Origin: Heteronotia binoei
Lineage: Eukaryota
NCBI RefSeq assembly: GCF_032191835.1
Contig: NC_083239.1
Location: 16,306,001-16,370,000, forward strand
Length of the DNA: 64,000 bases
Direction of reading: 5' to 3'
In this document: positions 14,225-64,000 of the stretch, piece by piece
How positions within the stretch are numbered: position 1 is the first letter of the stretch
How the letters are laid out: each line of letters opens with the position of its first letter
Made by a program: the position numbers and the translations under genes
The notes under the pieces: generated by a model
What the model saw: only the letters and a program-made list of their open reading frames with translations
The model's database searches: none
What the model was told of the DNA's origin: nothing

Positions 14225-14395
14225 TTTAGGATGACCCCATAGAGTTTTTCAAAACATAAGACAAGCAGAAGTAGCTGCCTCTGTGTAGCAGCCCTGGCCT
14301 TCCCAGTCCCGTCCAAATGTTAAGCAGGGCTGACCTTGCTTAGCTGCTGACATCTGATGAGACTGGATTAGCCTGGGACATCCAGGTCAGAGCAA
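14225..14395 (-). mobile_element. 5S rRNA-derived SINE
   Basis: Reverse complement contains a degenerate 5S box A/box C head and the body shared with 16455-16650, 28114-28275 and 63795-64000. Confidence 0.6.
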
Positions 14396-16454: not shown

Positions 16455-16650
16455 ACTCTGTCAAGTCACAGCCGACTCATGGCATTCCCCGTAGTTTCCA
16501 AGGTAAGAGACGTTCAGAGGTGGCTTGCGATTGTTCGCCTCTGTGCAGCACCCTTGGACTTTCTGAGAAGTCTTCCATCCAAGTAGCAACCAGGGCCGAT
16601 AATATTTAGCTTCCAAGATCTGACAGGACTGGGCTACCCTGAGCCACCCA
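16455..16650 (-). mobile_element. 5S rRNA-derived SINE
   Basis: TCTTCCATCCAAGTAGCAACCAGGGCC...TTAGCTTCCAAGATCTGA is the reverse complement of the 5S internal control region. Confidence 0.7.
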
Positions 16651-16920
16651 AATCAGCACAGAAACCTGCACCTCCTGGATGAAAAAAAAGACACATTCTC
16701 TGAGCCTCTACACTGCATCAGAAGAACACTGGCTCTCAAGTTGTTTGCCCTTCAGATGATTTTCTGCATTGGTCCAAATATCGCTGTTCATGAAGAACAC
16801 GGGCTCCCAATTGCTATTGCTAATGGGCAGTGATGTCACATTCCACAGCCTAGTAGAAATTTTGGCGCCGTCAGCTGCCCATTTCTCAAGCAGCAGCTTC
16901 AACAGTTACCTGTGTTTTCA

Positions 16921-17661
16921 GTTGGCAAAGGCAAACCGTGCATTTGGCCGACTGCACAAAAGAGTGTGGAGCAACAAGCATCTGAAAAAAGGCACAAAGA
17001 TCAATGTTTACAAAGCGGTTGTGATGACAACCCTCATCTACGGCTCCAAATCGTGGGTTTTATACCGTCATCACCTGCGACTCCTTGAGCGCTTTCATCA
17101 GCACTGCCTTCGCACCATCCTCAACATCCACTGGAGTGACTTTGTGACCAACACTGAAGTCCTCAAGAGGGCGGAGGTTACAAGCATCGAGGCACTGCTG
17201 TTGAAGACGCAGCTGCGCTGGGCAGGGCATATTTCTAGGATGGAAAACCACCGCCTTCCCAAGATTGCTCTGTATGGCGAACTTTCCACCGGCCATCGAA
17301 ATAGAGGGGCACCAAAGAAGAGGTACAAGGACTCCTTGAAGAAATCCCTTGGCACCTGTCGCATCAACCATCACCAGTGGTCTGACCTAGCCTCAGATCG
17401 CAAAGCATGGAGGCACACCATCCACCAGGCTGTCTCTTCCTTTGAGAACGCACGCATAGTTGGTCTTGAGGACAAAAGGAGATTGAGGAAGAATCGCACT
17501 GCTACAGCATCAACCCCAAATCAGACTTTTCCCTACAGCCACCGTGGCCGGACCTGCCTGTCCCGCATTGGTCTTGTCAGCCACCAGCGAGCCTGCAGCA
17601 GACGTGGACTACTGCACCCTTCTTAAATCTTCGTTCGCGAAGTCAAGCTGAGAGAGAGAGA
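16921..17661 (+). mobile_element. 5'-truncated RTE-clade LINE, ORF2 C-terminus uninterrupted
   Basis: LAKANRAFGRLHKRVW..TKINVYKAVVMTTLIYGSKSW..LRWAGHISRMENHRLPK..KKRYKD; (GA)n tail. Confidence 0.95.
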
Positions 17662-25839: not shown

Positions 25840-26058
25840 TAGGGTTGCCAACTTTCAGGTGGCACCTGGAGATCTCCCATTATTACAATTAATCTTCAGA
25901 CAACCAGTATCAGTTCCTCGGAAGAAAATGGCTGCTTTGGAAGATGGACTCTGTGGCATTATACCCTGCTGAGGTTCCTCCCCTCTCCAAACCATGCCTT
26001 CCCCAGGCTCCACCCCCAAAATGTCCAGGTATTTCCTAACCTAGAGCTGGCATCCCTA
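25840..26058 (+). mobile_element. hAT MITE (TAGGGTTGCCA family)
   Basis: TIR TAGGGTTGCCAAC/GCTGGCATCCCTA; family body. Confidence 0.8.
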
Positions 26059-27711: not shown

Positions 27712-28275
27712 ATAGCCCAGGCTAGCCCAATCTTGTCAGATATCAGAAGCTTAAGCAGGATCAGCTAGGGCTGCCAAGTCCTTACCTCTTGCTGGTGGGG
27801 TGGGAGGGAGCCTTCTAAACGGAGAGCAGTGGCATCGTCAACGCAGTGATGTCGTGCAGAACTGATGTAATCACATTGGGGGTGTCACATGAGGGCATTC
27901 TGGTTTGAGGGCAAAACTGTATGGTAAAATAGCCCTCAAACCATAGAATTTTGCCCTCAAACCAGAGCATCCCTGTGTGACGTTCTCCAGTGTGATGATG
28001 TCACTTCCTCCTGATGTCGAGTCAGTGATGCCACTGTTTGGGGATGAGGTTTCCCTGGCTGGCAGGTGGTGGAGAGAAGCCCCCAAAAGTGGACTTATGG
28101 ACTGGGAACCCTAGGGTCAGCCCTGGTTAATATTTGGAAGGAAGACCACCAAGGAAGTCCAGGGTTGCAATGCAGAGACAGGTAGTGGCAAACTACCTCT
28201 GAATTGAATGTCTCTTGCCTTGAAAACCTTATGGAGTCACCATGTCAGCTGTGGCTTACAGCAGAACAAAAAAAA
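27712..28275 (+). mobile_element. 5S-derived SINE split by a MITE
   Basis: Head GCCCAATCTTGTCAGATATCAGAAGCTTAAGCAGG (27725-27759) resumes at 28114 with GGGTCAGCCCTGGTTAATATTTGGAAGGAAGACC. Confidence 0.8.
27766..28113. mobile_element. hAT MITE with internal palindrome
   Basis: TIR TAGGGCTGCCAAGTCC/GGACTGGGAACCCTA, 8-bp TSD GGATCAGC/GGGTCAGC, internal inverted repeat TCTGGTTTGAGGGCAAAA...TTTTGCCCTCAAACCAGA. Confidence 0.85.
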
Positions 28276-29744
28276 TGAACTCTGTGATAGTTTGAAGATG
28301 CACGAATGTGCTCTTTCTTTGTTTTCATTCTGCGCATTGTTATTGTCAGTGTTTGGACAATACAGCATTTTTATGGCATTTATATACCACTGACAATTAA
28401 GACAGAAGAAAGAAAACACATTGGACCTGAGAGGGATATTATTTCCCACCCTTGTATATGATGAGTAGTTTGCGTCTACATGAGGAAACTGTATCAGGAT
28501 GGATGTCTATTCAACTGGGCCTAGTTATGCCAGTCTTTGAAATCCTAAATCCTTTGAAATCCTAATGATTCTGAACATGGTGCCCAGGGGCACCATGGCA
28601 CCTGCCGACATGATTTCTGAAGCCTGCCAAGTGTTTTTTTATAAAGTGGGTGGGGACAGGTGGGGCTTTTGCTCAATAAGGCTTCTGATTGGCCACTTCT
28701 GATATTTGCTGTGCAGATTTTTTTTTAAATGTTGCTTTCGCAGCAGCTGATGCCACAGCACAAGGATCTTCACTTGTGACTAAAGGTAATCTGGGACAAC
28801 CATTTTGTAGATGGCTCTACTTTCTGCAGCAGCCATTTTAGTGGCAGTCATTTTTGTGGCTGTGACCAATCTCAGCATTTGTAATTCTGTGACAGAATTA
28901 CATTGTTGTCCTCAGACTCAGAAAGGTTGGGGATGTCTGCCCTAAAGCAGTCTTAGAGAATTATTTTGAAAACAGAGTGAGAGGCTGAGGTTCATGTCTT
29001 CCCTTCTCATAGGGATGCCAGGTCCAACTCAGGAAGTATCTGAGGACTTAATGGTGGAGCCTGGAGACTTTCCCATTCCCTAAATAAAAATATAGCAGGC
29101 TGTCCCCCTGAATACAGTCCATTTCCTCATCCTCTCTTTACCTTCAGATGTTTCCCCAGCACCTGCACTTCCACTAAATGAAAGTATAATTGTCATACCC
29201 CCACTTGTGAAGTATAATTGTCATACCCCCACTTGTGATGTTGCCATCCCCCTTGCCAAGCTCTGGTAGCATTTCCGAGTGTGGCTTTATTAAGGGGCAT
29301 ACATACACACATAGCAGCCAAAAAAAACAATTAATCCTTTTCCAAACACAAATAGTTTGCAAGTCTGCACTTTTGTGATCTCATTTGGGCAATGGTATAA
29401 ATTGCTTTACTCATGGGAGTTGCTAAATGTATCCAGTCTGTTTCATTTCAATCAACTTCAGACTAACACAGAAAAAGAATAAGGAAGAGAGTAGTCTAGG
29501 GGTGGAGTTTTCCTCCATCTCATAATCAGATTCTAGTTGACTCTTTACTATCCATTTTAATATACACACACAACTTCTGAAACAAATGCAAACCATAGAG
29601 GGACTCTGCTCACTTCTCTCTCACACACTTAACACACTCACTGGGAAGAGCCATGTGACTTGTGCCTGCTTGCCCCACCCCATGCAGCTTTTATCCTGTT
29701 GAAATTTAAAGGCATACACACATCCCTAAAACAAGCAGTTTGCT

Positions 29745-30256
29745 AGCTCCTATCTACGGGACCGCCTTTCTCCGCATATTCCCCAGAGAGCACTGCGTTC
29801 AGGGGCAAAAAACCTACTCTCGGTCCCCGGACCAAAAGAAGCCAGGCTATGCGTGACAAGATCTAGGGCTTTCTCGGTGGCAGCACCAGAGCTTTGGAAT
29901 GCTCTTTCAGAAGCCATACGGGCCCTGCGGGATCTGTCTGCATTCCGCAGGGCCTGTAAGACCGAGTTGTTCAAGCAGGCCTTCTAGGCTTGACGAAGAT
30001 GGCTGCCACCGGACATCACACAGAACGCCGGTGTTCACGGCTTGGAATTCTAATGCCGCTATAATGTATTCATCACTATATAATGGTTTTAATAATCTCG
30101 AATTGTAATACGTTTTTAAACTGAAAATGTAAATTATGGTTTTATATATTTTATTTGTTTAATTGTCTAGATACTGTGAGCTGCCCTGAGTCCGCTTGCG
30201 GAGAGGGCGGGATATAAATCAAATGTAATAAATAAATAATAAATAAATAAATAAAA
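29745..30256 (+). mobile_element. L2-clade LINE 3' fragment
   Basis: YLRDRLSPHIPQRALRS..AFSVAAPELWNAL..FRRACKTELFKQAF*, 3' stem-loop, and (TAAA)n tail. Confidence 0.9.
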
Positions 30257-30525
30257 TATCCTGCCCAGATTTAAAGGCACATTATGGCTGTTGGGGTGGG
30301 GAGGAGCCTGCAAAATAGGGGGATTCTCTGCCCAAACCTGGGACTGGCAAGCCTACCTCCTCAAAGTACTACAAACACTCCTTCTTTATCCCTTTTGGCC
30401 TCTGGATTGGTAACTGCTAGTGGTAACACTCACTGATTGCCCCAAAGCAATCAGCCTGGTGGTAACTCTCACTGATTGCCCCAAAGCCCTCTCGTTACTG
30501 ATCCTTGAATGAAAAGAGAGCAAGA

Positions 30526-33290: not shown

Positions 33291-34463
33291 GAAGAAGATG
33301 CCTCAGAAGAGGAGTTTCTTGCTATGTGGTCCACCCAGAAGCTCCAGGGTGGACCACATTTCTTGTTCAAGTCCCCTTGGAATCAGCAGGCCAGGAAACC
33401 CCTCTGAATAGATCTGGCCACCTCTTGCACCTCCAGAGTTTTTTTCAGGTTTGAAGAAAGGTGGAGAGCCAGAGGCAAAGTCTGGAACAGGCAGAGAACT
33501 GCATACTTGGCAGATTAAAGTCTCCATTTCCACTCCAGTCTCTTGGCAAGATCAAGGACCCAACACTAGAACTTAAAAGGAAGAAAGACCTAGGTCTCGC
33601 TACAGGAAATGATGGGACTTTCTGTTCCATATCTTGAAGATAAGTCTAAAACTTAGTTGGCTCAGAATTGATGCAAACCTGGAGTTTCTTCCTGGATGAA
33701 ACGTTAGCAAGAAGCTTAAAGAGTGCTTTGATGACCAGTGAAATTGTTCAGGAAGGTTTTGTGTATTGCTAACCAACACTAATTTTAAAAACATACTGGG
33801 GTTGGAGCAAGAGAAGAATTGCCCACATCTTTTTGTTAGTGTGGAGTAGCACTGTTCTTTTTTTTTGTTAATGGGAAGAAAAGCATACAAAGCTTAAAGG
33901 ACCTGTTGAATTTTCCCCTCACTTCCAGTTATTCAAGGCGTGGAAGCCATCTTACAAAAAACAATGGCAACTTCCTTTCAACTAATTCCAACTCCAGATA
34001 GCTCCCCTTGCCCTTCCATGGTTGAGCCATTTAACAAAATGCAAACTCCAGGGCATGCATTGCGCCTGCATTCACTGAACTTGTGAAAAAGGCATTGGTG
34101 TACACAGGGGGGGGTTTTTTGTAGCAGGAACTCCTTTGCATATTAGGCCACAGACTCCTGATGTAGCCAATCTTCCTGGAACTTAGTACAGAGCCTACTG
34201 TAAGCCCCTGGGTGTACGGTATATATTTGATTTTTTTTTATTTGTGTGTTGGGTAATTCTCATGTTACATTCAATGCATGCACACTTATTCAGGACCTGC
34301 ATTCATTGCTACTTGTTAATAGAGTTACTGTAAGTCCACTTTATGGGGAACATCAGTATTGATGATCAACATGGTTTTCAGGGAAGCTGATTCTTTGTTA
34401 CTGGTTTTGTTATTGAAGCTTTCCCATAAGCTTCCTGGGATGCCAAGGATCTCTTGAGACACA

Positions 34464-34750
34464 GGGCATTTTCGCACTGACCTTTTACTGGCGCGACCAC
34501 CCTCCTCACGCCGGCGGATCTGCAGGGATTTCGCACCAGAAGCGCCGGCGCAGCCAAAAGAGCCGGCTACTTCCGTCGCGAAACCCGCTCAAACGTTTTC
34601 CTGCTTCTTGGCGGTTTCCGTTTGAGGTGGTTTCAGGACGGAAGTTGCCGGCTCTTTTGGCTGCGCCGGCGCTTCTGGTGCGAAATCCCTGCAGATCCGC
34701 CGGCGTGAGGAGGGTGGTCGCGCCAGTAAAAGGTCAGTGCGAAATCAGCC
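34464..34750. mobile_element. Young fold-back MITE, PIF/Harbinger-like
   Basis: About 108-bp inverted arms with 1 mismatch, CpG-rich, termini GGGCATTTTCGCAC/GTGCGAAATCAGCC, 3-bp flanking repeat ACA. Confidence 0.85.
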
Positions 34751-35871
34751 ACAGTTTTGGGGGGGAAAACCCACTTGTGTTGTGGATAGACTGTTGGCCT
34801 TAGATTGAGGAAACCTGGGCTCAGATCCTTGCCCAGCTGTGAAGCTGGACCTGGTGGGGTGGCTGTGAATGAGTCATTTTCTTTCAGCCTGTTCTACACC
34901 ACAGGCATGTTGCAATGATAAAGTGAGATACCCCTCATAAATGCTTCTTGTGGTTCCTTAAAGAAGAGATGGGATATAGTTCTGGTGTGAACAAAAAGAA
35001 ATATTAAACCATTTATATCATCTGAAGCCGGTGAGAATTAACGGGTCTGCTGCAACTGTGCAGGATTGCACCCAGAATCAAGGAATGACAGTGGTCGGCC
35101 AGAATGGTGTTTCTCTTGAAGATGGAAAATCATTGATAATGCTATTTTGTCAATAGTCACCATAAATATTCATAGCTTGGCAGAGTAATTTATGCCCTAT
35201 GGTAAAATGCTTGACCTCATAAGTCTTTTTTTTCTCCATGGCTCTTTCACACGGAAAAGCAGGTTTTAATGTGCTTAATAGAAAGTCAGCAAAGATTGTA
35301 AGCATAGACTTCAATGTGCTTGTATCAAGTTCAGATTTCATTGCAAACCAAGCTATTTAGTCACTTAAAATCACAATTCCAGCTAGATAAGAGTCTGTAA
35401 CAGCAAAGTAAAACAGATACCTTCAGGTCTAACAAAATTGATACCAGCACAAGCATTTGCGAATCAGCTTGTACTTCCAACAGATGTGTTGGGGTATATG
35501 TCTGTTAGTTGGATGTATCTGTTAGCTGGATATACCTGTGTTTCTTTTGTGTATATAAAAAACATTGATTTAATGGATATACACTAAAAAGCATCTTGTT
35601 GCATGTATGCTGTGACTTGGAGCAAAAAAAAAAAAAAAGCTTATGCTGCAATTAATATTAGATTTTTGTCTGGGTTGGAAGTCCCTCACATTCACCTACT
35701 CTAGAGGAGACTGGAGCAAGAGATGTCCTTACCCAGGCACCTCTGAGGCAGGCAGCCCAACCAACAGTTGTGGGGGGAGGATCAAGGGCAAGGCCATGCT
35801 CAGAGATGAGCCAGCAGCAGCACATGCCTCAGAAGAGAGGTGGTAGGCCCAGCTCATGCCTCAGAAGGAAA

Positions 35872-36095
35872 TAAGGTTGCCAGGTTTGTGTTGGAAAATA
35901 CCTGGAGATGTTGGGGGTGGATCTGGAAGAGGATGGGGTTTGGGAAGGGGAGGGGAGGGGCCTCAGGATGGTACAATGCCATAGAGTCCACCCTTCCAGG
36001 CAGCCGTTTTCTCCAGGGGACCTGACTTTTGCCAGCTGGAGATCAGTTGTAAAAGTGGGAGATCTCCAGGCCCCACCTGGAGGCTGGCAACCCTA
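35872..36095 (-). mobile_element. hAT MITE (TAGGGTTGCCA family)
   Basis: TIR TAAGGTTGCCAG/CTGGCAACCCTA; degenerate TSD GAAGGAAA/GATGGGAA. Confidence 0.85.
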
Positions 36096-36491: not shown

Positions 36492-36689
36492 TAGGGTTGC
36501 TAACCTCCAGCTGGCACCTGGAGATCTTCCACTCTTACAGGATCTCTGGATGACCAAGATCAGTTACCCTGGAGGGAAAAAATGGCTGCATTGTAGGGTG
36601 GACAGGCATTATACCCTGCTGGGGTCCCTCCCCTTCCCACGTCCACCCCTCCTCAGGCTCCACCCCCCAACCCAGTGTTGGTAATCTTA
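36492..36689 (+). mobile_element. hAT MITE (TAGGGTTGCCA family)
   Basis: TAGGGTTGCTAAC...GTTGGTAATCTTA; family body. Confidence 0.75.
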
Positions 36690-36999
36690 CTAGAGGGTGC
36701 TTTGTCCCTGAACTACAACCTGCCACTGAGGGCATCTGGCAACTTTAAGGTGCCACAGAACTACTGCTTTATGTTACTGAACGTGGCAAACTTTTTGATT
36801 TTTTTTAAATGTTAAAATAAGTTGATTTTATTTTTTAATTACACTACATGCCATTTTTTAGCTCTGTAGTATTTATATGGGTTTTGATGTGTATTCTGCC
36901 ATATTCAGGCAAGATTATTGTTCTTATGATTGGCTGCTAGCTGCTATTCCTTTTGCTAAGTGTGCAGTCTACTTGTTTGAGCAGTGATGCAGCTGTGTG

Positions 37000-37282
37000 G
37001 TTGCCAGGTCTGGGTTGGGAAATACTTGGAGATTTGGGGGCGGGGGGGAAGAAGCCTGGGGGAGGGCAGAATTTTTGGATGGAGGGACCTCAGATGGTCT
37101 AATGCTCTTTTTTAAAAAAAAGTATGTCCCATTTTTTTTCTGATTTGGAAATCAGAGAAGCTAATGCGATAGAGCCCACACTCCATAGCAGCTGTTCTCC
37201 AGGAGAACTGATCCAAGTAGCCTGGAGATCAGTTGTAATTCTGGGAGATCTCCAAGCCCAACCTAGACACTGGTAACCCTAG
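37000..37282 (-). mobile_element. hAT MITE (TAGGGTTGCCA family)
   Basis: GGTTGCCAGGTCTGGGTTGGGAAATA...CTGGTAACCCTAG; family body. Confidence 0.75.
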
Positions 37283-40089: not shown

Positions 40090-41635
40090 CATACCATACC
40101 ATACCATACCATACCATACCAAACCTTTAATGGCATAATAGATTCAGATAAAAATACACAGAATATAAAAATTTAAACATTGGAGATAAAATCAAAATAA
40201 AACCGAGCTTACAGATACATTCAAACATGCTCAGAATTAAATTTAAGGATGTCAGCCAGAAATTTTGCCACAGCCTCACTAACCACCCCCTCAGTATCAC
40301 TCAATAAATAATAACAGGGTGGCAGAATAGACAAATCTGGAGAAAAAGAAAGCTTGCCAAATAAATCTTTACGGAGGTTATGGTAAAAAGAACAATCAAG
40401 CAATATATGCTGGATTGAGTCAGGGGTATTCGCTCCACAGGAGCAAAGTCTGTCGGCTAAAGGGACTCGCTGATATCTCCCTTGTAAAACTTTGGAGGGA
40501 AACGCGTTTAGTCTGGCCAACATAAATGCCCTGCGATGACTTGGAGTGGTTAGGTCTGATAGATAATTGGGCATTTTGCCACAAAAAGCATAAAGACCTA
40601 AGGAAGCTGGAGAGCAAGTATAAGGGAGAGTTGGCCGTAATTTCGTTTCCTCCAATTCCCACAGTCTCAGTTTAATACATCTGAAGATATATGACTCTTC
40701 AGAGGTAGAAAAATCATCTACCTCTAACCCCAATTGATTGAGTTTAGACAGAAGCACTGCTGTCCAGGACGAAATATATGGGTCTCTTTTCATACAATCA
40801 AGAAGGCTGTTGGGATCTGTTCTAAAATGAATTTTGAGCCAGAATTTAAACACTGCAATCCAGGCTTTTGTCTCCACCAAAGACTGACCCACTTCAGAGC
40901 AGAGAGCAAAGTAGGACACACATTTTGGCAAACCAAGAATTTGTCTAAAGAATGAGGCTTGAATGCCCTCCACTTTCCTGGTAAAAGCTGAGATCCATAT
41001 AGGGATACCATAGAGGATTTGGGCAAGCGTTTTGGCTTTGAATACTTTAATAGCTGCTGGAACTAATTGGTTGCCCCTTGCAAAGAAAAACTGTTTAATT
41101 TGAGCAGCTGAACACTTAGCCAAGTTGATGGTGTTGTTACGATGTGAAACCCAGCTTAACTTGTGGTTAAAAGTGATCCCCAAGTATTTAAAATTTTTTG
41201 TTTGCTCGATTGTTGAATTGCCAATAAACCATCTCTGTGGGCCCCAGCAATTTGAAAAGACAACTACTTTAGATTTGGTATAATTGATAGTAAGTGAATT
41301 ACAATTACAGTAGTCATAAAAGGCGTTCAAATACCTTTGCAGGCCCACTCTTGTACAAGAGAGGATGGTAGTGTCATCGGCATAAAGTAATAAGGGGACC
41401 GCTCGGCCTGCAAGTTTAGGCGGATGACCATTGATAGGGGTCAAAAATTGTGCCAGGTCAGTTAAAAATAAATTAAAAAGATGTGGGGCCAGCACACAAC
41501 CTTGTTTTACCCCCTTTAACACTGGGATTTTACTAGTCAAGTCACCGCTAGAAGAAAATTTCACTTGGCAAAAGGTATTAGAATGAAGTTTCCTCAAGAG
41601 AAACAGCAAACGAGGGTCCATTCCCAGGTAACCAA
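40090..41635 (-). mobile_element. 5'-truncated non-LTR retrotransposon, probably RTE-X clade, with an intact ORF2 C-terminal part, nested in the hAT
   Basis: Uninterrupted ORF 40221-41635: GVKQGCVLAPHLFNLF, LLYADD, FKYLG, ILYGIPIW, C-terminal CSCG..HILLDC. The 3' end ATGCCATTAAAGG is followed by a (TGGTA)n tail. TSD GCCCCAAAC at 40081-40089 / 41636-41644. Confidence 0.88.
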
Positions 41636-42305
41636 GCCCCAAACAACACAAGAGAAGCGGTGGACCGCACCTAGCTCCACATCATTCTGTATCTGACACA
41701 AAGCAAGAAGCATTTAGACTTAACTTGAGTGATCGATGTTGGCTGGTCTAGGCTCTTTTGCGTTACCCAGGGTGCACCACGAGGAGGCGAGCCAGAGTTG
41801 CACCCCAAATGAGGAAGATCACTGGGAGGGCCTCAAATTGTGTGAGAGGAAGGCAACCATTCCTTCTCTTTCAGCTCAGCAGCAACACACCAGTTATCAC
41901 TGTCCCATTAGCGGGACCTCAGCATTGGTATGGCTGCTGGCTGCCTGTCATCATCAATGGCACCTTCCTCTTTCCTCCTCCTGCCCCTGAAAAAAAAAAA
42001 CTGGGTTATCCTGGCTGGGCCTGTGGGTGCTGTCGGTTACAGTTGGGGGCTGCAATGGCCCTTTCTGTATTATTAGGCATGTGTGGATGGGGGACTGGGA
42101 AAATTTGGATTGCTTTGCAGATTTTAAACCAGCATTCACTTTTGATTTGGGGAGGGATGAGGGGTGGGGGATGCACTGCCAATCAATTTGTGAGTGAGTT
42201 TTTGAGCTGTCTTTGGACTCTAGTCTATTTTTAGTGGAGGAGTGTTTTACACCCACCTTCCAAGCACGGGCCAAGAGAGGATGCAGGCACAAGTAGGTGC
42301 TCACT

Positions 42306-45050
42306 TCATTCACTCTCAAACTCTACGTTCGAGGAGCCGAACAGAGGCAAGTTGACCTTCAGGAAGACCAACTGCTCAACTGTCCAAGGTTGCAGGCGAT
42401 TGCGATGTGGGCAGACAATGTCGCCCATATGCGAAAAGACGTGCTCGCTCTGCACGCTTGTCTGTGGGCATGAGAGCAACGCCTTGGCCATGGAGGAGAG
42501 GGCTGGCCAGACCTCCTCCTTCATGACCCAGTAGTCCAAAGGAAACGTTTCCTGCGGCTCGAGGGGCTCCAAAAGATAGTCCCTCACCATCGCAGCACCT
42601 GTCTTTGCTCTTGGTTCCCTACCCACTCCTAGAGGGGCCAACGACCAGCCCGATGAGTGTCATCTCAGGACTCTTTGTGGCATGAGTCTGGTGGGAAACA
42701 CTGCCTAGGAGGTTGGGGATGAACAACAGCAGTGGAAGTGGCAGATGAGCTGCTTCCACCCCTCTCCTCCTCACCTACCAGCACTGGGCCTGCCCTGACT
42801 CTGGAATGCTCGACCTTCTGGGAGAGCTCGTCTCGCCAGTGATTGAGCTCGTTGGCCCGCTCGGCGACTGTGCCCTTAAGGCATGGGTCTAACATGGTCG
42901 CCATCATGTTGACCTGATCCTGGGTGAAAGTCTGAAAGTGGGCCTCAAGCCCTTCCTGCAGCCTAACAACCAGGGCATGCACAAGTGGAAGAACGTCTGC
43001 ATGGCCTTGAGCTGGCACTAGAAATGAGGCCAGGTCCTCACGCACCATCTGGACCATGGGGACGACCAGTGTGATGCTCGCCGTGTCAGACGAGAGCATT
43101 TCTCTGTGGGTCTTGAAGGGCTGAAGAACCTCCACAGTCTGAGAAATGACCACACAATCCTCTTGGGTGAGACGGTTCTCATCCCGAAAGACCCTCGTCT
43201 CAGAGACAAAGGCATCCAGGGCTGCTCTCTGTTCCACCATGAGCTCCAGCATGGCACAGGTGGAGTTCCAGTGTGTGCTGACGTCACCGATCAGGTGGTG
43301 CCCTGGCACGCCTGTCAGTGTCTGTTTCTCACGCAGCCGATATGAGTCCGTATTGCTGCGTGAGAAGTGAGCCGTAATGTGCCGACACTTCTGGAGCAGA
43401 AGTCGGTACTCATGGGTCGCGGCTAGATACCGACGATCCTGGCTTTTCGTCTGGCCCAATGCGTCCTTAACCACGAGGTGGAGAAGGAGGGCCACGCAAG
43501 GAAGGCGTTTTAGGCCCTGACGCTGGACAGCCGCCTTGATGTTGGAGCCACCATCAGTCACCACGAAGCCCATGGTGACGTCCCCGCTGCCTACCCAGCC
43601 CTCTAACTGCCATGAGAGGATGGCTCTGAGAGTGTCCGCCGTGTGCGACATGTCGACTGCTTCGGCGTGCAGAAAGGCCCAGCGATAGCTGGCCTGGCAA
43701 CCCTGACCCTGCCTGCTGCTACTGCTGCCACCCCCACACTGCACTGCCCCCAGCTCTCTGGGTTGCCACCAATGCGCAGTCAGGGAGAGATACCCCTTGA
43801 ACACATGTTGGGAGCTCCAGATATCTGAGGTGAAATGAACAGTCCCCCCGGCAGCACGGCACAAATGCTCCTTCACAGATCTGGTCGCCCTGAAAACAGC
43901 TGGCACAATCGTCCTGCTAATGGTGGTTCTCACAGGAACTTTGTACCAGGGCACCAGGTACTCGAGCAACCCTAGCTCCCCAGGATTCTCAATCACTGAA
44001 AATGGAAGCCCATGGGTGATCGACCTGGCAAGGTTCCAGGCGATCACCCTCCTGCCATATCTGATTCCCCCTCCTAGCACACAGGTGCGTCCCCCACCAA
44101 ACATCTCAGGCAGAGATGCCTGGTGTCCCTGTACTCCCACGGAACGCTCCTGGAGAGCGGAGGTAGTCGCGATGGGACGGACCTCCTGGCTGGGTGGTGT
44201 TGGCCGCTTGGGCACCACAGCACCAGCCTGCTTCTCCCCCTTAAGAAGCCCTGAAAACACCCTTAAGGGTGGTGCTTCTGCAGGTGATTCCGCATCTTCC
44301 CTGGAGTCAGGTGGGCAGGGTCCTGCCCACGACTGATCCAGGCCCTGCTCAGCTGGCACTGCACATAGCGTGGATCCTCCATAAGTTGGAAATGCTTCCA
44401 GACTTCGGAGGTGAACGGATGCCCAAACTGACTGGCAGCTTGGGTGTCCTGAGACACCTCCTTTGAGGTGCTCGGGGCAGACATATCGTGTGTCGGGGTG
44501 GCAGGAGGGGCTAGCCGCTGGGGGGAAGTGGGCAGAGATGGAGGCACCTCGTGTGTCTCCATCTCTTCCCCCTCCATTCCATGCGGCCTCCACTCCTGGT
44601 CACCCCCTGAAGGACTGCTGGTGCCTGAAGAAACCGAAGAAGGGGGCTGGTCCTCCTCAACCTGCTTCTCCTCCAGCTCCTGCACGACACTCTGCACCCT
44701 CCTTGGGGTGATCATTTTGGACAGAAAACTGTCCCCAAAGCTCATCTCCAAGGAAGGCTGCTCTTGCTGCCCCTCTTCCGGCTGCTGAGGCCAAGTGACA
44801 TCAGCTGGAGGAGAGACTGCCCGAGCAGCAGACCCCTGCTCAGTGCCAGTATCTACCCTGCTCAGTGCCAGTATCCAAGGCGGGCCTTCTTCATCGCACT
44901 CTGGCCAGACGTCGGAGTGCTGGAAGGCGGCTGTGGAGTGGCCCCACGCACAGGTGGGGGGGAGACCTGGGTCCTCCCCCTTCCCTCCACCCCTCTAGTC
45001 TTCTCCTTGGCCTTGCCCCCAAGGCCCCTCTTCTGCTGCCTGTCACTCAT
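42306..45050 (-). pseudogene. hAT transposase pseudogene (BED finger, DDE core, hATC dimerization domain)
   Basis: SEVWKHF..YVQCQL..MRNHLQKHH (BED), VHFTSDIWS..YLSLTAHW, VTDGGSN, CVALLLHL (CxxH lost), THWNST, PLDYW..WPALS..LLSCPQTSVQSEHVFS (hATC). Several frameshifts. Confidence 0.93.
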
Positions 45051-47499
45051 GTCACCCTTGGCCAGTCTCACACAGCCTGAACTGAGAATGGGGTTTTTTA
45101 CAAACAGTGGCCCTATACACAGGTGGGGGGGGGACTGGGTCCTCCCCTCCACCCCTCTAGTCTTCTCCTCGGCCTGCCCCCAGGGCCTCTCTTCTGCTGC
45201 CTGTCACTCATGTCACCCTTGGCCAGTCTCACACAACCTGAACTGAGAGTGGGGTTTTTTACAACCCCCCCTCCCAAGAACCAGAAGTGAAAAGGAACAA
45301 CAGCAGCACAACACAGCAGCAGCAAATCAAACACATAATCATTTTAAAACAGTAAAAAAATTAACTTTTAACAATACAGGAACTTTACCAACCCCTCCCC
45401 CCCAAAAAAAACCCCTTCACCCTAAGCCCATGAAATCCAAGCCACCCAAATCAGGAAAAGTAAAAGGACACTGCACTTTTAAAAGTCCTCTCACTAAAGT
45501 AAAGTCAAACCCTAACCTCAAATAAGCTACCCATCCAAATCTGGATAAGTAAAGGGACTCTGAGTCTTAAAAAGTCCTTTTACTTTTAGCCGAACTAAAA
45601 TAAAATCAAGAACCCCAAGACTGTCTTACCTTAGATGTCTTCTCTTCTTCAGGCAGGTCAGGCAAGGCTGAGAGAGAGCAGCAGCAGCTGAGGCCAAGGG
45701 CCAGCACAGCACAATCTCTCTCACACCAACACAGCAGCAATGGAATGGAGTCCAGTCAGGCAGACTCCTTAAAAATGTTCTCTGGCGCTACACAGAGCAG
45801 TTTCAAAAAAATACCACTGCTCTGTGATTGGCCAGAGAACAGTGTTTACTTGGATACCCAAGTAAACAAAAGAACAACAATGTTGCTGATGGCTGGGGGA
45901 TTAGCCCAGCCATCAGCTACACAACAGCCCTGCGAAGCATGCATTTGCATTGCATTTTGCCAATGCATGCTTTGGATTGGCTGCTGGGGCTCCTCTCCCC
46001 CTCCCCCTCCCTTCCTGATCCCATGGAGGCTATGGGAGATGCGGGAAAAGGCTTCCAAAGGCAGGAAAGGAGGCAAGCAGCTTCCCTGAGGCTGCAGAAG
46101 CTCCTTTCCCGCCTTTTACATTGACTTCCGAATACTTCCGAATATTGATTTGGAAGTATATGGGAGCCGTATATGGCTCCCGTATAATGCTTGCAAATTG
46201 GATTTGGAAGTATACGACACCATATACTTCTGAATTGGGGTATTCGGTGATCTATTTGGTTCGGCCGAACTGAATGCATACCCCTACCCTAGACTTGATG
46301 GTGTTTTACACACACACACACACACACACACATGCATGGAGGCGGAGTGTGTGTGGCTTTTAACACACATCTGATTAAAGTCTTTGCAGAGTATGCTGTC
46401 TCAGCCTGAGGACTTGGCAATATGTAGTTAGGTGCAGTAACTGAAACAAAGCCTTCCTAGTAACTGTTTGGTGCCTTAGCTGCTAAATTACAGTTGTGCT
46501 GTATCAGGCACCAGGTCAAACAAGATGAGTTGTTAGAAAATCTCTGAATATCCAGTGTATGTTTAATAGCTGCAGACCAACCAGAACATCAGAAAAGAGT
46601 AAGTTTGCAGAATTCTTTACTGTGCTAGAGAATCTTGAAAAAAATGAGGTGTTTCAGGAAAAGTTCCAAGGTTGTTGTTTGTGAAGTTCTGCAAAGGGAG
46701 TATCAGCACATGCTTAATTCAGGCTAACTGTGCAAAATACATTCCAGGTTGTACAACAGGTTAAGGGGGCAGTGAAGTGTGTAAGAATCATAGGAAAAGA
46801 GATGTTAATTTAATAGGAAGTCTTCAAAGACACAGGTAACTATGGCTAGAAGCTGTATTAGTAGATGAACCAGCTAAAGCTTTAGTTGACAGATTAACTG
46901 TGCTGTGATTTAAGTAGGACTTTCCTTCCTAACAATGGGGAGCACCTTTTTTTGAGGCCTTGGAAGAAGAATACCAAGCTCACAACTAAATAGAGTTTTC
47001 TTAATTTGTATTTATTAATCAAATGCCTGATTTGATTCAATACAAATACTTATTTGAATCTTCCTCAGTATGTAAAAGGTAACTTGTTCATGTGAAAGGT
47101 AAAGGTATTCCCCTTGCAAGCAACAAGTTATTACCGACCCACAGGGTGACATCACATCGTGATATTTTCTTGGCAGACGTTTTGTTATGGGGTGGTTTGC
47201 TATTGCCTTCCCCAGTCAACTATGCTCTACCCCCAACAAGCTGGCTACTCATTTTGCCTACCTTGGAAGTCTGAGTCAATTCTACGCTAACTACCTTGAA
47301 CCCAGCTTTCACTGGGACCAAATTCCGGTTGTGAGCAGAGCTTGAACTGCAATACTTACTACTCTGCACCACAGGGCTCCTCATAAAAAATTGCTCATGT
47401 ACATTGATGCAATTTGGATGGGAGAGGAAGAATACAGAGAAAGGAGGGATTATCCCTATAACTCCTGCCAAGTTTTTGCTACAAGAAACTGGCCTTTCT

Positions 47500-47660
47500 T
47501 CACCATTTAGCTTCCGAGATCTCCTCTGATCTCGGAAGCTAAATAGGGTCAGCCCTGTCTAGTATTTGGATGGGAGACCTCCAAGGAATACCAGGTTTGT
47601 GATGTGAGGCAGGCAAAACCATCCCTGAACATCCCTTATCTTGAAAACGCTGCAAGGCAC
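47500..47660 (+). mobile_element. 5S rRNA-derived SINE
   Basis: GATCTCGGAAGCTAAATAGGGTCAGCCCTGTCTAGTATTTGGATGGGAGACCTCCAAGGAATACCAGG matches the 5S box A/IE/box C and is followed by a non-5S body. Confidence 0.75.
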
Positions 47661-48890: not shown

Positions 48891-49064
48891 AGGAGGCAAT
48901 AATTATAGTACTGAACATTTACAGTCCATTTTAAGTCTTCAGAGCCTTTCATGTTGGTGGACTGATTCAGTTCATACGTTGCCCCAAACCATTTGTTATG
49001 GAAACTTAATTATTTATCAGTTTAGAAGCAACAAGTAAATTCAGGTTTATTTAGACACTTTGTA

Positions 49065-49280
49065 GCATTGCCAACTCCAGACTGTGAAATTCTTGGAGAT
49101 TGGGAGGTGAGGTGGTGCTTGTGGAGGGCAGGGTTTGGGAAAGGACCTCAGTGGGGTATAACAGTATAGAGCCCACCCTCCAAAACTGCCTTTTTCTCCA
49201 GAGAGACTGGTCTCTGTAGTCTGGAGATAAGCTGGAATTTTGGGAGAACTTCAACCTCTGCTTGAGGTTGGCAGTCCTAG
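49065..49280 (-). mobile_element. hAT MITE (TAGGGTTGCCA family)
   Basis: TAGCATTGCCAACTCCAG...GGTTGGCAGTCCTA; family body. Confidence 0.75.
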
Positions 49281-52899: not shown

Positions 52900-54807
52900 C
52901 CAGCACCCCTTGGCAGCCATTTTGTGGTGGTGCCTACTCCTCAAAATTATAAAAGTGTCCACAGAATGACAAGATTGGGGACCTTTGCTCTACATACTGT
53001 ATAACAGGAGTCTTATTTCCTGAGAAGAAACATTTCAGAAAATGGGAAGTTTATCAGGATACAGTGCATATTCTTGCTATGGCCCTTCTATATTACCTTT
53101 GCTTTTGCAGAGCTGCAGTAACTGCAGCCTATGGACATCTGATAGCAAAGCACAACAAGGGCTGTTTGTGTAAAAGTCAAGTACCATTTTGCAGAACGGT
53201 GACAATAAAGCGGCATTACTTAGAGGAATCCAGGGAGATTTTTCGTGAAGTTGCCCCTTAAATGTTAAAGGCTGTTAAAAAGGAGTTGACGTTCAATAAA
53301 GCAGAAATGAATTTGCAGCCTAATGTTTGAATTCCCTCATGCCAAAGCCAAATGTCATGGAATTCTGGGGTTGTTTAGAAAGATTGCATTTGAGAAGCTC
53401 AGCTTATTTTGTTCCAGCTAGGCATGGGCAGACTTCTTTCTTTCGGTGGAAGGTTAAAAAGAGAGGTGACAAGGGGCTGCCTCCATCTAGAATCATCCTC
53501 ATTCCTTCATTCAGTTTTAGTGGAGAATGCAGACCACAGTATTGACAACATTTTATCTGAGTATTTCCCCCATTGGCTTCCTTTCTCTTGGTCAGATGTG
53601 ATTTGTGGTGATTCCCCCCCACCCTATACAATGGCAGCAGGCTGCTTGGTGTGCACAGTGGTACTGAGGGTTTCGCAATGCTGCTATCTGTTCTTCTGTA
53701 CTGTATTTTCAGGGCTAAATTACGATTCATTCTTCCTGCCGCTGTTTCTGTTTTTCATCTTTAGTCATTAATACTTTTTTTTTTAACTTTCTGCAATTAA
53801 TCCTTTGTTATCCATTCTTATTCTTAAGTGGGTGCTATTCTCTGCCCTTAAGCAAGTTATTAACCCTTCCATGAGGGGGAAATGATGATACTACCTTAGC
53901 ACAAGGGTCAAAGTGACCCCATATTACAGCAAAAAATAATGGAAGCTTGATAGTGCTCTCAATCATGGCATTCGCTACTAAGAAAAAAATCAGGCCTTAA
54001 GAATGACTTTTTTAGCAATGCAGGACAAAGAGTGAAATTTGGAACTGGGGTCAAAAATCTCCCTCATTGAATGCTGCTGTCTGTCTTAATGCTGCAGATG
54101 GCTGTACCATTTCACCTTTGGCCTAACGGGTCATTTGACATTCAAGGAAGTGATGCCTTTTCTTTGTTTTGGATCAGTGAAGCTGTGAACAATTCGTAAT
54201 ATAGCTCTGTATGGTCTCTTTTGATTGGTTGTGGCTCTCCAAGAACTCATGGGGAGAGAATTCTTTCCCACCTCTGCTTCCTGAGCTCTTTCATCTATCC
54301 AATCAAGATGGCTTGATAGAATATTAGATGCTCCTACCGAGTCATAGTTAACATAGTGTGAACCAATTTGGGAAGAACCACTTAAGCAAATGAGCTGATA
54401 TAGACACAGCATCATTGGTAGTTTAGGGGTGTTACTGTGTATGGATGCTAAACTTAAATAATTCATTTGATGGTGTTAGAAAGTGCTGCCAAGTTGCAGC
54501 TGATTTATGGTAACCCTGTAGGGTTTTCAAGGCAACAAGCAATCAGATGTGGTTTGCTATTACCGTCTCTGTGTAGCAGCCTTGAACATGGACCCCTGTC
54601 ATGATCCTAGGTCTAGTGAGGCCTCCAGGGAAGCCTATATTAAATTAGTTACAAGGCCCATATTTCTCAGGATCCCTTCTGTCCCTCTGATTGGGTGGGC
54701 AGCAGTTTTGGAGGGAAAACTTGCCCAGACGGCTGGGACCTGGGAGAAAAGCATAAAAAGGCTAGCTACAGAAAAGAGAAGTGTTTTCAGTAAAGGCTGG
54801 GCTGGAG

Positions 54808-55326
54808 TAGGGTTGCCAAGTCCAATTCAAGAAATATCTGGGGACTTTGGGGATGAAGCCAGGAGACTTTGGGGGTGGAGCCAGGAGACATTGGGGGCGG
54901 AGCCAGGAGCAAGGGTGTGACAAGCATAATTGAACTCCAAGGGAGTTCTGGTCATCACATTGAAAGGGACAGCACACCTTTTTAAAGCCTTCCTTCAATA
55001 GGAAATAATGAAGGATAGGGGCACTTTCTTTGGAAGCTCATAGAATGGGATCCTCTTGTCCAATCGTTTTGAAACTTGGGAAGTATTTTGGGGAGGGGCA
55101 CTAGATGCTATACTGAAAATTTGGTGCCTCTACCTCAAAAAACAGCCCCCCAGAGTCCCTGATATCTGCGGATCAATTCCCCATTATTCCCTAAAACTGC
55201 CGGAGATCTAGAGCTGTGGGGGCTGGGGGGGTGGGACTTCCCCCTGCCGGCTAGCTGGCTGGGGGGCGGGGGGACACCTGTAAAACCAGGAGATCTCCCG
55301 CTGGGACCTGGGGATTGGGAAGCCTA
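54808..55326 (+). mobile_element. Non-autonomous hAT (Blackjack-like TIR)
   Basis: TIR TAGGGTTGCCAA/TTGGGAAGCCTA and a perfect 8-bp TSD GGCTGGAG (54800-54807 / 55327-55334). Confidence 0.92.
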
Positions 55327-55604
55327 GGCTGGAGAGAGGGGTGGCCAGACCGTCCCGGTCTCCCGGGACATTCCCGGATCTGGCCACCCAATCCCGGATC
55401 CCGGGCTGCCTATACCGGGACCATTAAAGGTCCCGGTTTAGGCAGCCCAGGAGCCGGTGGGCCGCGGGCGCGGGCGGGGAAGGCGGGGAGTGAGGGAGGG
55501 AGCGTCCCTGCGCCTGCGCAGGGCCCCTGCGCACGCGCAGGGACGCTCCCACCCTCACTCCCCGCCTTCCCCGCCCGCGCGCGGGGCCCGGCGGCAGTGG
55601 TGGA

Positions 55605-56298
55605 GGCCTCTCCGTGGCCTCCGCTGGTCGCTGGAAGCCCTCCAGAGACTCTGGAGGGCCTCCAGCGACCAGCGGAGGCCGCGGAGAGGCCGCGGGGCAC
55701 CCGGCGCTGGTCCCGGAAGGCCTTCCAGAGCCTCTGGAAGGCCTTCGGGGACCAGCGCCGGCCAGCGAAGGCTTCCCCGCGGCCTCCGCTGGTCCCTGGA
55801 GGCCCTCCAGAGTCTCTGGAGGGCCTCCAGGGACCAGCGGAGGCCGCGGGGAAGCCGCGGGGCACCCGGCGCTGGTCCCGGAAGGCCTTCCAGAGCCTCT
55901 GGAAGGCCTTCCGGGACCAGCGCCGGCCAGCGAAGGCTTCCCCGCGGCCTCCGCTGGTCCCTGGAGGCCCTCCAGAGTCTCTGGAGGGCCTCCAGGGACC
56001 AGCGGAGGCCGCGGGGAAGCCGCGGGGCACCCGGCGCTGGTCCCGGAAGGCCTTCCAGAGGCTCTGGAAGGCCTTCCGGGACCAGCGCCGGCCAGCGAAG
56101 GCTTCCCCGCGGCCTCCGCTGGTCCCTGGAGGCCCTCCAGAGTCTCTGGAGGGCCTCCAGGGACCAGCGGAGGCCGCGGGGAAGCCGCGGGGCACCCGGC
56201 GCTGGTCCCGGAAGGCCTTCCAGAGCCTCTGGAAGGCCTTCGGGGACCAGCGCCGGCCAGCGAAGGCTTCCCCGCGGCCTCCGCTGGTCCCTGGAGGC
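55605..56298. repeat. 165-bp tandem repeat (about 4.2 copies), each unit = 85-bp palindrome + 61-bp palindrome
   Basis: GCTTCCCCGCGG recurs at 55771, 55936, 56101 and 56266. Arms checked base by base. Confidence 0.97.
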
Positions 56299-56825
56299 AC
56301 GCTGAAGCAGCCTGTCGGTCACTTCCAGGTTCCTGTCCTGCATCTTGACCGGTGTTATTAGTGACAGGCTGCTTCGGCGTGCCGCTGCGCCGGCCCCCTT
56401 GGTCCCACAACGATGGGACCGATGCCACAGGGACGGGCTCGAAACACTCTATAACCCCTCAAAAGAACAGCAGTCTAGCTCGCTTCCCCCGAGCCCTGCC
56501 GCCATAAGCCTCAAGGGGGCTCATTTTGCGGCATCTCCCGGCGGGAGGGTGGCACCCGCACGGGACACATATCAAATGAAAGAGGGGGCGCAGGGCTATC
56601 AGAAACAGTCGGCGGAGGGAGTCGGGAGACCACCCCACTGGGGGATCCACACCCCGAAAGTGATGAAGGTGGCGCAGATAGAGCCAACAGAGCCAACAGG
56701 ACAAAATAAATAGGCTGCATTATGCAGCACAGTTGAGAAAGTGCCTTATCCCATATACTGATGAAGTATATACAGGATTTGAGAACAAAATTGTTTCCGG
56801 CGGTGATATTTGGGGGATTTTTGGG

Positions 56826-56981
56826 GACGTCACAGGAAGTGCTGTGAAGTCACTTCCTGTTTCCGGCAGGTGACGCGGGGGAAATGATGTCACAGGAAGT
56901 GATGCCACTTCCTGTTTCCGGTGGTGGCATGACATCACCGGAAGTGACGTCACCGGAAGTGACGTCACTTCCTGTTTCCGG
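56826..56981. promoter_or_regulatory. Cluster of ETS (GGAAGTG) and CRE motifs, including two tandem CCGGAAGTGACGTCA
   Basis: Seven GGAAGTG cores. Exact ETS-CRE composites at 56938-56952 and 56953-56967. Function not shown. Confidence 0.45.
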
Positions 56982-57429
56982 CGGCGCGCGCGCTTCGAGC
57001 GCGCGCACCCCCCCCCCCCCCCCCAGTGTCCCTGGCTGGCCTTCAGACATTATGGTCACCTTGGAGGTTGCAGCTAGAAGTGATCCCTCACCCAAGGGGG
57101 TGGTGAGTCTGTAGAGGAAGGAAACCTTTAGTTCGTCATCTCAGGGCTATTATTTTCTTTGCATCACCTTTACTGTTTCTACCTTTCACTGTTGCACTAA
57201 TAATTAAAACTGAGTCATTTAGTTTTGAGCACCCACAATAAAATGATTGTTATACTGCCTGGGTCCTCACGTCTCTTTGGTCACGGATAGAAGGTGCTTT
57301 GTAAAGAAGGAAGACAGAGGTGGGTGGGTGGTCTGGGCCCTCCCACACAGACTCTTATCAGAGTGGTGGCAGCCAGTAGAAGCCCCTCTCCGGTCCCCTG
57401 CTGCGTGACAACTTTACACTTTCTTTACC

Positions 57430-57525
57430 ATTGGTGGTGTCCCATCCAAGTACTAACCAGTACTGTCTCCTTTATGAGATCTGTCAAGATCAGGCTGGTC
57501 TGCTCATCCAAATCAGGGTAAGAAT
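57430..57525 (-). mobile_element. 5S-derived SINE head
   Basis: TGTCCCATCCAAGTACTAACCAG...GAGATCTGTCAAGATCAGGCT, reverse complement of the 5S head. Confidence 0.65.
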
Positions 57526-59817
57526 TCATTTCCTGTATAATATACATTGCTGTGAACATTTAAATGTTTTCCGAGGTTTAGGAGATTGTCAATTGCAATT
57601 GTTTGTTGCAGGATAGTCTCTGCTTGCAGAATGTGCGTTTTCCAGTATGGACTTTAAAGTTAATCATCGGCTAGACCAGGCTGACACAAGAGCATGTTAA
57701 TATGTTAAACTGCTTTAACGGAAATCATTAGCAGAGCTGATAATGTGTATGGGGACTAGATGGATTGTGAGCTTGTTAATGTTCAAACGATAACGGTTTG
57801 GGGTTGTTTAAACAGATGCTTTATTAAACAGAATTGATATCCCTGCTATTGTTATGCTGTAGCTGTCGTTCCAACTTGGCTGTCCTTTGCAGAGAAGGCA
57901 ATCCAGGAGGGAAAAGAAGGCTATAATGCAATATCCAGTGTGGATGCCACTATAGAAACAGGCAGTTTGTATGGTTTATGAAATGAGAGATTTCAAGTTT
58001 ATGTCAGGGCTTATGCATTTTTCTCTTCGATTTGTGCTTTCCAGGCTTTATTAAGACTTTTAAAAAGTTTTTCTTTACACTTTTAAAAATAGGAATAGAA
58101 TTAAAAGAAATATTTGACTAATAAAAAGCCCCATACTCGGAAGACATAATTGTAGCTGAAGTTCACTGTACAGCTGTATGCCGGAGCAAAAGTAGATCTC
58201 CTCCCCTCTAAAATAAGCTTAGAGCACCTTAATTATCCTGTGATGGAAACCACAGGGGGAAAAATGATGGATCAGCCTGAACCTGCTAAGGAAATGGGTA
58301 GTAAATAGAGCTTGTTTTTTAAACTGAAGGCTGTAAAATGACAGTCATCAGCAAAGGTCTTCCAACTGGCCTGTTCAAGAAAATGACTTTGCTTAGCTTT
58401 GAAAATGAAGGATGGCATAGAGGAGACCTTCTAGCAGCCAGAGAGACAGAACAGCTGCAAGGAAGATTATGTAGACAAAGGTTTAAATAAGTGTAGTGGC
58501 TGTTACAAACCAGTCCAGGTCTGGCAGGGAAGTGATGAGTTTTGTCAAATTATAAATGACGTGAAGCAAGACTGAGAAGCATTCTTCCTCCCCACCCCCT
58601 TCTAAATACTCGAATGTGGGGTCACCCAAGAAGATTTACAGCAAATGTCAGGCAGACATGGTGTGTAAAGACCTCAGCCTTGCGAATGGATCTGCAGAAG
58701 TTGCTGCTAGCTCACAAATGCTTTTATTAACCTTCATGTTCTTATGTTAGCCATATATTTATTTATTTAGATATTCATACTCTGCTTTCCTCCCCAGCGG
58801 GGACCTAAAATGCCTTACATCGCTCTCCTTGCTTCCATTTTATCAACAACCCTGTAAGGTTGGTGGGGCCGAGTGTGAGTGCCTAGCTAAAGGCCTCCCA
58901 GGGAGTTTCCATGACAGAGATTCGAACCTGGGTCTTTCAAATCCTAGTCCAGCACTGACTAATATACCAGTAAGGCATATCGAGAGCCGCAGAGAGAAGA
59001 ACCCTGTTACCTTTGAGATTGCATGAGCTTGCCTAGCTGATCAGTCCTTGCTTGCTGCTGTTTGAATCAGACATGAAGCTGCTTTATACTGAATCAGATG
59101 TGCCTTGGTCCATCAAGGTCAGTATTCTCTGTTCAGATTGGCAGTGGCTTTCCAAGTTCTCAGGCAGAGGTCATTCACATCACTGCCTACCCAATCTGTG
59201 TATTGAACCTGGGACCAAGCAGATGCTTTACCATGGCCCGTTGGCCAATGAGTGGCTGCTTGGAAGCCTGTATTAATTTGTTCAGTGTATTGTCACAAGG
59301 AACTGTGAACCCTGCTGATATAAGCCTGCTTTACCTAGAGAGCAGAATGAGAAGTAGAATCCTGAAGTATACTGCACCAGTTCAAGGTGCAGGTGAGGAA
59401 AGACTTTTTAAACGTCCCCCTCCCCACTTAGGAATGACAATCCTCTGTGTTGTTAAAACAGAATGCAGCACTTCTGGAGGAGAGATTCTAGTCTAGCATA
59501 TTCCCCATTGTGCTAGTTTTCTATTTGCAAGGAGTTTTTCAGATAGGGGAGCAATGAAAAAGTGGCCCCAATGTGCAGCTTTCAGTCTCTTTGGTGACTG
59601 TTAGTTATGGTATATCAATGAAACCTCTTGCAGTGTACTCCTGAGTAACATGTAAATAAGAACCGTCCTGCTGAATCACTGGGTCTCCAAGAATCTCTTC
59701 CAACAGCAATTAGCTTGGTGCCTCCAGGAAATTTCCAAATGGGTTAGCTGGCCTGTTTGGAAAGCTTCTGGAAACATATGGCTGCTTGCTTAAAGGGGGG
59801 GGGGTGGAGAGGGGAGA

Positions 59818-63794: not shown

Positions 63795-64000
63795 CATGGC
63801 TGCTGGAAAGCACTGGAACCATATCAAGTCATAGCCAACGTATGGCAACCGCATAGGGTTTTCAGGGCAAGAGGTGAACAGAGGTGGTTTGCCGTGGCCT
63901 GCCTCCATGTAGCAACTGTAAACTTCTTTGCTGGTCTCCCATCCCAAGTACTCATCATTGCTGTCCCTGCTTAGCTTCTAAGATCTGTTGAGATCAGGCT
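63795..64000 (-). mobile_element. 5S-derived SINE
   Basis: GGTCTCCCATCCCAAGTACT...GCTTAGCTTCTAAGATCTGTTGAGATCAGGCT plus the family body. Confidence 0.75.

Follow-up and report, generated by a model that had tools for sequence, protein, structure and literature searches.

Foldback-like transposons such as the FB elements of Drosophila and Galileo of the P superfamily (PMC4168063) consist of repeat-rich, hairpin-prone DNA with internal tandem repeats that vary in number; in them the repeats prolong two long arms at the termini, and these arms pair with one another. The block of DNA described here, which comprises 1742 bp (positions 55335-57076) of non-coding sequence with a GC content of 67% in a 64-kb stretch of contig NC_083239.1 of Heteronotia binoei (hereafter the window), shares the repeat-rich and hairpin-prone nature of these elements, but its palindromes are local and follow each other head to tail. 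With non-autonomous hAT elements, here represented by MITEs of the TAGGGTTGCCA type, it has in common that it is non-coding and lies among hAT MITEs with 8-bp TSDs, and that the GGTCC(C) words found just inside several termini of these MITEs recur in dyad form in nearly all palindromes of the block. In contrast to them, however, it is far richer in GC and CpG, contains a palindromic minisatellite and has no demonstrable TIR or TSD. Vertebrate CpG-island housekeeping promoters with their ETS/GABP, CREB/ATF and NRF1 sites form a third point of reference, as the block lies within the range usual for such promoters in its length, its GC content, its CpG o/e and the motifs it contains, whereas most of this island is made up of perfect palindromes, and no exon or ORF with a family match adjoins it. 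Finally, in quasipalindrome correction and arm-to-arm conversion, as known from template-switch mutagenesis and from the palindromes of Y chromosomes, differences are mirrored on both arms and palindromes thus stay perfect, and the same kind of mirrored differences is seen here, albeit on a scale of tens of bases, in a tandem array within a repeat, and with the process itself deduced from the pattern.

Taken together, we give a probability of about one in two to the reading that the block represents interior sequence of a family of non-autonomous DNA transposons, equipped with a palindromic minisatellite and with a promoter module resembling a CpG island; the transposon class would most likely be that of cut-and-paste elements of the hAT type. 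A description of the family to which the block belongs was not found in the literature on the MITE terminus, on hAT MITEs of geckos or on palindromic minisatellites in transposons.

As judged from alignments, the CpG-rich block sits in a stack of nested insertions that interrupt an old SINE (Table 1). BLASTN comparison with other copies in the window revealed a Sauria-type SINE copy of which the left part ends at position 54587 and the right part resumes at 57431, while in the three intact copies of the window only 4 nt lie between the equivalent points; the 2.84 kb from 54588 to 57430 are therefore considered to be inserted DNA. Within it a CpG-poor stretch, a MITE, the CpG-rich block and another CpG-poor stretch follow each other in this order, and over 54300-54807 the CpG o/e is about 0.13. 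Sauria-type SINE copies, 65-80% alike, are present in the window at 63825-64000, 28118-28263, 16443-16656, 14200-14296 and 47467-47584 in addition to the split copy (54479-54587 and 57431-57550).

Table 1. Features of the interrupted SINE and of the DNA inserted into it (positions in the window; strand given where assigned).
Feature	Position	Strand	Remarks
Old Sauria-type SINE, left part	54479-54587		BLASTN to four other window copies, all ending at 54584-54587
Outer left inserted DNA, CpG-poor	54588-54807		Between SINE break and MITE; TATA-like stretch near 54752
Complete TAGGGTTGCCA-type hAT MITE	54808-55326	+	Perfect 8/8 TSD; end profiles E 1.8e-19 and 1.6e-15
First hairpin, 51 bp	55335-55391 (55339-55389)		11-nt outer arms; GTCCC...GGGAC dyad; 'left TIR' of the first-pass annotation
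64-bp palindrome	55394-55457		32-nt arms, 88% complementary; GGGACC/GGTCCC dyad at centre
143-bp palindrome	55453-55595		71-nt arms, 92%; -102.4 kcal/mol, z -16
Tandem array	55604-56298		TRF: 165-bp period, 4.2 copies, 97% matches
Hairpin	56296-56383		21-nt outer stem, imperfect interior; -30.7 kcal/mol, z -9.0
Unique CpG-rich spacer	56384-56820		CpG o/e ~0.69; without coding signal; one small GGTCCC/GGGACC hairpin at 56400-56421
Promoter-like module	56821-56985		Three 55-60-bp units; ETS-type hairpins at 56830-56975
GC palindrome (56986-57006), then C run (~17 nt)	56986-57025
CpG-free tail	57026-57076		Holds the 'right TIR' (57046-57063) of the first-pass annotation
Outer right inserted DNA, CpG-poor	57077-57430		AATAAA near 57238
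Split SINE, right part	57431-57550		BLASTN to other copies, starting at 57431

With respect to the limits of the inserted units, the best flanking repeat found is the exact 7-mer AGAAGTG, which occurs at 54777-54783 inside the outer left inserted DNA and again at 57076-57082. Read as an 8-bp TSD, AGAAGTG(T/A), the two copies match at 7 of 8 positions and would delimit a unit some 1.76 kb long, inside which the MITE would lie 22 nt from the left end. Since zones as wide as those searched should share about six exact 7-mers by chance, the pair is a mere candidate TSD. For the outer insert as a whole, CTTGAACAT and CTTTACCAT were also considered as a TSD, but their agreement at 7 of 9 positions is not significant given the number of registers tried. 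Nor can the outer flanks be read as LTRs: a TATA-like word and an AATAAA are present but prove nothing, there is no TG...CA pair with a TSD, and, for a solo LTR covering 54588-57430, no TG/CA pair with matching 4-6-bp flanks is found at the SINE break. A 'primer-binding-like' TGG word and a 'splice donor' at 57517 were discarded, both lying inside the SINE copy. Direct reading likewise did not reveal the combination of 5' TC, 3' CTRR, a hairpin 10-20 nt upstream and insertion between A and T that characterises Helitrons, the only CTAG (57074-57077) being located about 70 nt from the nearest hairpin and followed by A.

The first-pass annotation had described the block as a chain of hairpins, and repeat tools, a reading of 54900-57500 and DNA folding bear this out at the positions where it had placed them. 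When folded as single-stranded DNA, seven of the nine segments tested had z values between -4 and -16, with none of 200 shuffles folding as well; the fold of 55335-55460, for instance, has a predicted energy of -54.3 kcal/mol (z -9.65). The two weaker segments are the hairpin at 56384-56445 (z -1.5) and a short hairpin at 56690-56730 (z -2.8). Within each unit of the tandem array, the 87-bp palindrome A is separated by a 9-nt spacer from the 61-bp palindrome B, which is followed by an 8-nt spacer; both spacers are invariant. Palindrome A is present in four copies with 43-nt arms, three of these copies being perfect, and palindrome B in four copies with 30-nt arms. The words GGGAC and GTCCC occur 27 times in the block, at about eight times their background density, and in nearly every palindrome a GGTCCC...GGGACC pair is placed symmetrically. 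The unique spacer downstream of the array (56384-56820) has no repeat elsewhere within the window. A second CpG-rich fold-back of the window, a near-perfect 275-bp palindrome at 34470-34744 with 126-nt arms (96% complementary) and a 23-nt loop, has a CpG o/e of about 0.9 and GACGGAAGT-type words near its centre, and it is without sequence similarity to the block.

The way in which the palindromes differ from each other is informative with respect to their upkeep. Copies A2, A3 and A4 are identical, while A1 differs from them at nine sites, seven of which are mirrored (three arm pairs and the centre), and all 11 sites that distinguish the 61-nt core of A from B are mirrored as well. Mismatches within the stems are few and mostly of the G:G, A:A or C:C type, with G:T and A:C types equally rare, and there is no G:U bias on either strand. 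Because differences are mirrored on both arms and a strand bias towards G:U is lacking, the pattern points to a re-symmetrising at the level of the DNA and not to selection on RNA. According to the mechanism we propose, slippage would expand the array, and arm-to-arm correction, by template switching at quasipalindromes or hairpin-templated repair as suggested by the pattern of changes, would keep the palindromes perfect, such that selection on an RNA fold would not be needed for their maintenance.

In its base composition, too, the block stands apart. Its CpG o/e is 0.72 versus 0.24 for the rest of the window and 0.13-0.21 for the immediate flanks, and all of its sub-segments except the last 46 bp reach at least 0.65. 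The first-pass annotation had stated that CpGs are retained here in otherwise depleted surroundings; the retention is confirmed, whereas the surroundings turn out not to be uniformly CpG-poor, as positions 34251-35000 have a CpG o/e of 0.89. Measured against the usual definition of a CpG island (>200 bp, GC >50%, o/e >0.6), the block exceeds all three values. Moreover, seven ETS-type sites (CMGGAAGT, in both orientations) and two full CRE sites (TGACGTCA) are found at 56833-56975, and a perfect NRF1-type site (55528-55539) occupies the centre of the 143-bp palindrome. ETS sites reach a density of 4.0 per kb as compared to 0.06 per kb outside, and in the remaining 62 kb of the window sites of the ETS, CRE and NRF1 types hardly occur. 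Judged by these motifs and by its CpG-island values, the block has the motif set of a housekeeping promoter. The survival of its CpGs could mean either that the copy is young or that the ETS/CRE/NRF1 module keeps the block unmethylated in the germ line in the manner of a housekeeping CpG island.

The termini are less telling. A pair of hAT-Blackjack-like TIRs had been proposed, made up of 55340-55354 and the reverse complement of 57046-57060, but the match of 11 out of 15 positions is no better than chance: an inverted match at least as good turned up in 107 of 300 shuffled versions of the border zones and in 98 of 300 pairs of random genomic windows, and Smith-Waterman alignment of the wider border zones yielded a score at or below the shuffle mean. 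Since the sequence proposed as left TIR belongs, as one of its arms, to the local 51-bp hairpin and the match does not rise above chance, the two ends cannot be taken as a demonstrated pair. Short TIRs of the hAT type (about 10-25 bp, starting with YARNG) were not found at the borders of the block; a GGTGRCCA-like word is common to both. The first-pass annotation had also failed to find a TSD, and rightly so, there being no fitting 8-bp repeat at its limits or nearby; at 55337 and 57063 the flanks read CTGGAGAG on the left and GAGGTTGC on the right. The candidates GGCTGGAG with GGCTGGCC (6 of 8 positions matching) and CTGGAGAG with TTGGAGGT (5 of 8) were rejected as not significant given the registers tried. 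Profiles built with nhmmer from seven and eight true MITE ends recover every MITE end in the window with E-values from 1e-12 to 1e-21, and they had no match at the borders of the block, even when the target was reduced to five short pieces; a resemblance of the right tail (57008-57076) to both TAGGGTTGCCA MITE end types, seen by eye, was withdrawn after this search. Transposon-like ends of the block are thus not demonstrable at this locus. A 33-nt match (85%, E 0.028) links the left border at 55322-55351 to 42481-42513, a span coding for a hAT dimerisation domain, and is probably due to chance.

That another MITE directly abuts the left edge of the block was, on the other hand, correctly seen: the right copy of its TSD GGCTGGAG (55327-55334; left copy 54800-54807) ends 2 bp before the start proposed for the block (55337). 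A sibling MITE at 1667-2552 is likewise flanked by a perfect 8-bp duplication, GGTTAGGA, and because of the 8-bp length of the TSD, perfect in two copies, the TAGGGTTGCCA-type family is regarded as hAT-like. Both copies are 83-97% identical across three aligned pieces, which span nearly all of the shorter MITE, the copy at 1667-2552 having about 380 bp of extra sequence. Altogether, at least nine hAT MITEs, of which two have perfect 8-bp TSDs, were counted in the window, along with a hAT transposase remnant. Copies of the TAGGGTTGCCA type, ranging in size from 217 to 1346 bp and with end types A and B that differ between the two sides, are located at 54808-55326, 1667-2552, 25840-26058, 35872-36095, 36492-36747, 36996-37281, 29010-30355 and 49063-49279. 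The transposase remnant at 42306-44751 on the minus strand (CpG o/e 0.65-0.68) is split over at least three ORFs, comprising a BED zinc finger that narrowly misses the cut-off (E 1e-3), a 642-aa middle ORF without a Pfam match and a Dimer_Tnp_hAT domain (E 2.8e-17), and two tandem units of about 162 bp (44937-45264) are found just upstream of it on the same strand. No termini could be located for this remnant. Other mobile elements in the window include an ORF for a LINE-type reverse transcriptase (40221-41651, minus strand; RVT_1, E 1.3e-17), two near-identical C-terminal fragments of a LINE ORF2 in a repeat spaced at 9.9 kb (7283-7708 and 16769-17626, plus strand) and, by eye only, ORFs resembling a pol of the Ty3/gypsy or ERV type (~9700-12400, minus strand).

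With regard to the coding content of the block, the first-pass annotation's view of it as non-coding is upheld, since none of eight ORFs reached the gathering score of a Pfam family. The repeat itself is open to reading on both strands, which accounts for the long ORFs over the array, and for one of these ORFs, coding for 348 aa, no homologues were found in a word search. No tRNA genes were found. A cmscan search returned no Rfam family at its gathering threshold, all 98 matches falling below; the best one reached 57.8 bits as compared to a threshold of 97 (mir-3158), with E-values down to 2e-9 for miRNA models. Nearly all of these matches are to miRNA-precursor models and mostly occur on both strands, as is the case for any perfect palindrome. 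The structured-RNA cassette suggested earlier thus finds no backing, the Rfam matches being only to generic miRNA hairpins far below gathering scores and the stem mismatches lacking a G:U bias. Exact-pattern scans yielded one chance match in an AT-rich contig of IMG/VR and none in the JGI metagenomes.

Several other explanations have to be weighed against the reading of the block as a transposon interior. It might be a CpG-island promoter resident at the locus, or an orphan CpG island, that belongs to a host transcript such as a lncRNA; built from repeats, it would now be under selection, with no recent insertion being involved. The island-like composition over 1.7 kb, the dense ETS/CRE/NRF1 set typical of housekeeping promoters and the contrast between decayed or absent ends and a pristine core would all be in line with such a scenario; however, there is no adjoining exon or ORF with a family match, and the apparent splice donor that might have served such a transcript belongs to the SINE copy, which makes a resident island rather unlikely. 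An intact young non-autonomous hAT element with exact limits at 55337 and 57063 and with its ends as TIRs would in turn account for the high CpG content and the perfect palindromes by its youth, would draw on the word shared by both borders and would fit a window in which hAT elements are active and abundant. Yet its end match is equalled by a third of random controls and no 8-bp TSD is present at its limits, and if the 141 CpGs had been kept by youth alone, the TSD should still be visible as well, so that we regard this version as quite doubtful.

Alternatively, the ETS/CRE module could drive an RNA from which the eight hairpins of 61-87 nt would be processed into small RNAs in the manner of a miRNA cluster. 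While the hairpin sizes are within the range of pre-miRNAs, a promoter-like module lies beside the array and low E-values are obtained for miRNA models, the same Rfam matches stay far below gathering scores and appear on both strands, the stem mismatches show no one-strand tolerance of G:U, and the stems are perfect and have a GC content of about 75%. Perfect stems with such a GC content are unlike typical Drosha substrates, and a hairpin-RNA cluster is accordingly deemed very improbable. The most remote of the scenarios considered, a relic of the terminus of a DNA virus whose ends, like those of parvoviruses or adenoviruses, would have abounded in hairpins and GGAAGTGACGTCA-type motifs, starts from the fact that in erythroparvovirus and adenovirus termini clusters of ETS and ATF/CRE motifs adjoin terminal hairpins. 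The juxtaposition of ETS and ATF/CRE clusters with hairpins in the block is a resemblance only, the scans of IMG/VR and of the JGI metagenomes speak against a viral source, and there are no viral ORFs anywhere near the block; this origin thus appears extremely improbable. The idea of a new class of fold-back element, put forward in the first-pass annotation, finds no support either, since one half of the block is not complementary to the other and every palindrome is local; the long terminal arms of mutually pairing repeats that define foldback elements have no counterpart here, as no inverted repeat joins the left and right parts. In sum, support is lacking for a new element class, for a relic of a virus and for an RNA with a conserved structure alike.

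The interior of a non-autonomous transposon, presumably of the hAT type, remains our preferred interpretation, despite the fact that it has to cope with the lack of a TIR above chance, of a fitting 8-bp TSD and of a match to the local MITE end profiles, and that the block has no similarity to the hAT transposase remnant of the window when the pieces of the latter are compared to it by tblastn. Within this framework, amplification of sites bound by the transposase of the family may have given rise to the GGTCCC dyads, an origin that is conceivable but unproven. A more far-reaching proposal is that of a 'mobile CpG island', i.e., a non-autonomous transposon that spreads a hairpin array along with a self-protecting, unmethylated ETS/CRE/NRF1 promoter, and in which the GGTCCC dyads of the array are kept perfect for a function, be it as docking sites for transposase or as a source of hairpin RNA. 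Although it would explain why a pristine core is found between unrecognisable termini, we consider this proposal unlikely. If it were true, the ends of old copies would decay, but CpGs and palindromes would be retained in them.

If the family does carry a promoter module that is unmethylated, it would serve to spread CpG-island-like promoters through a reptile genome, and its palindrome array would offer a natural test case for the question of how short DNA palindromes stay perfect.
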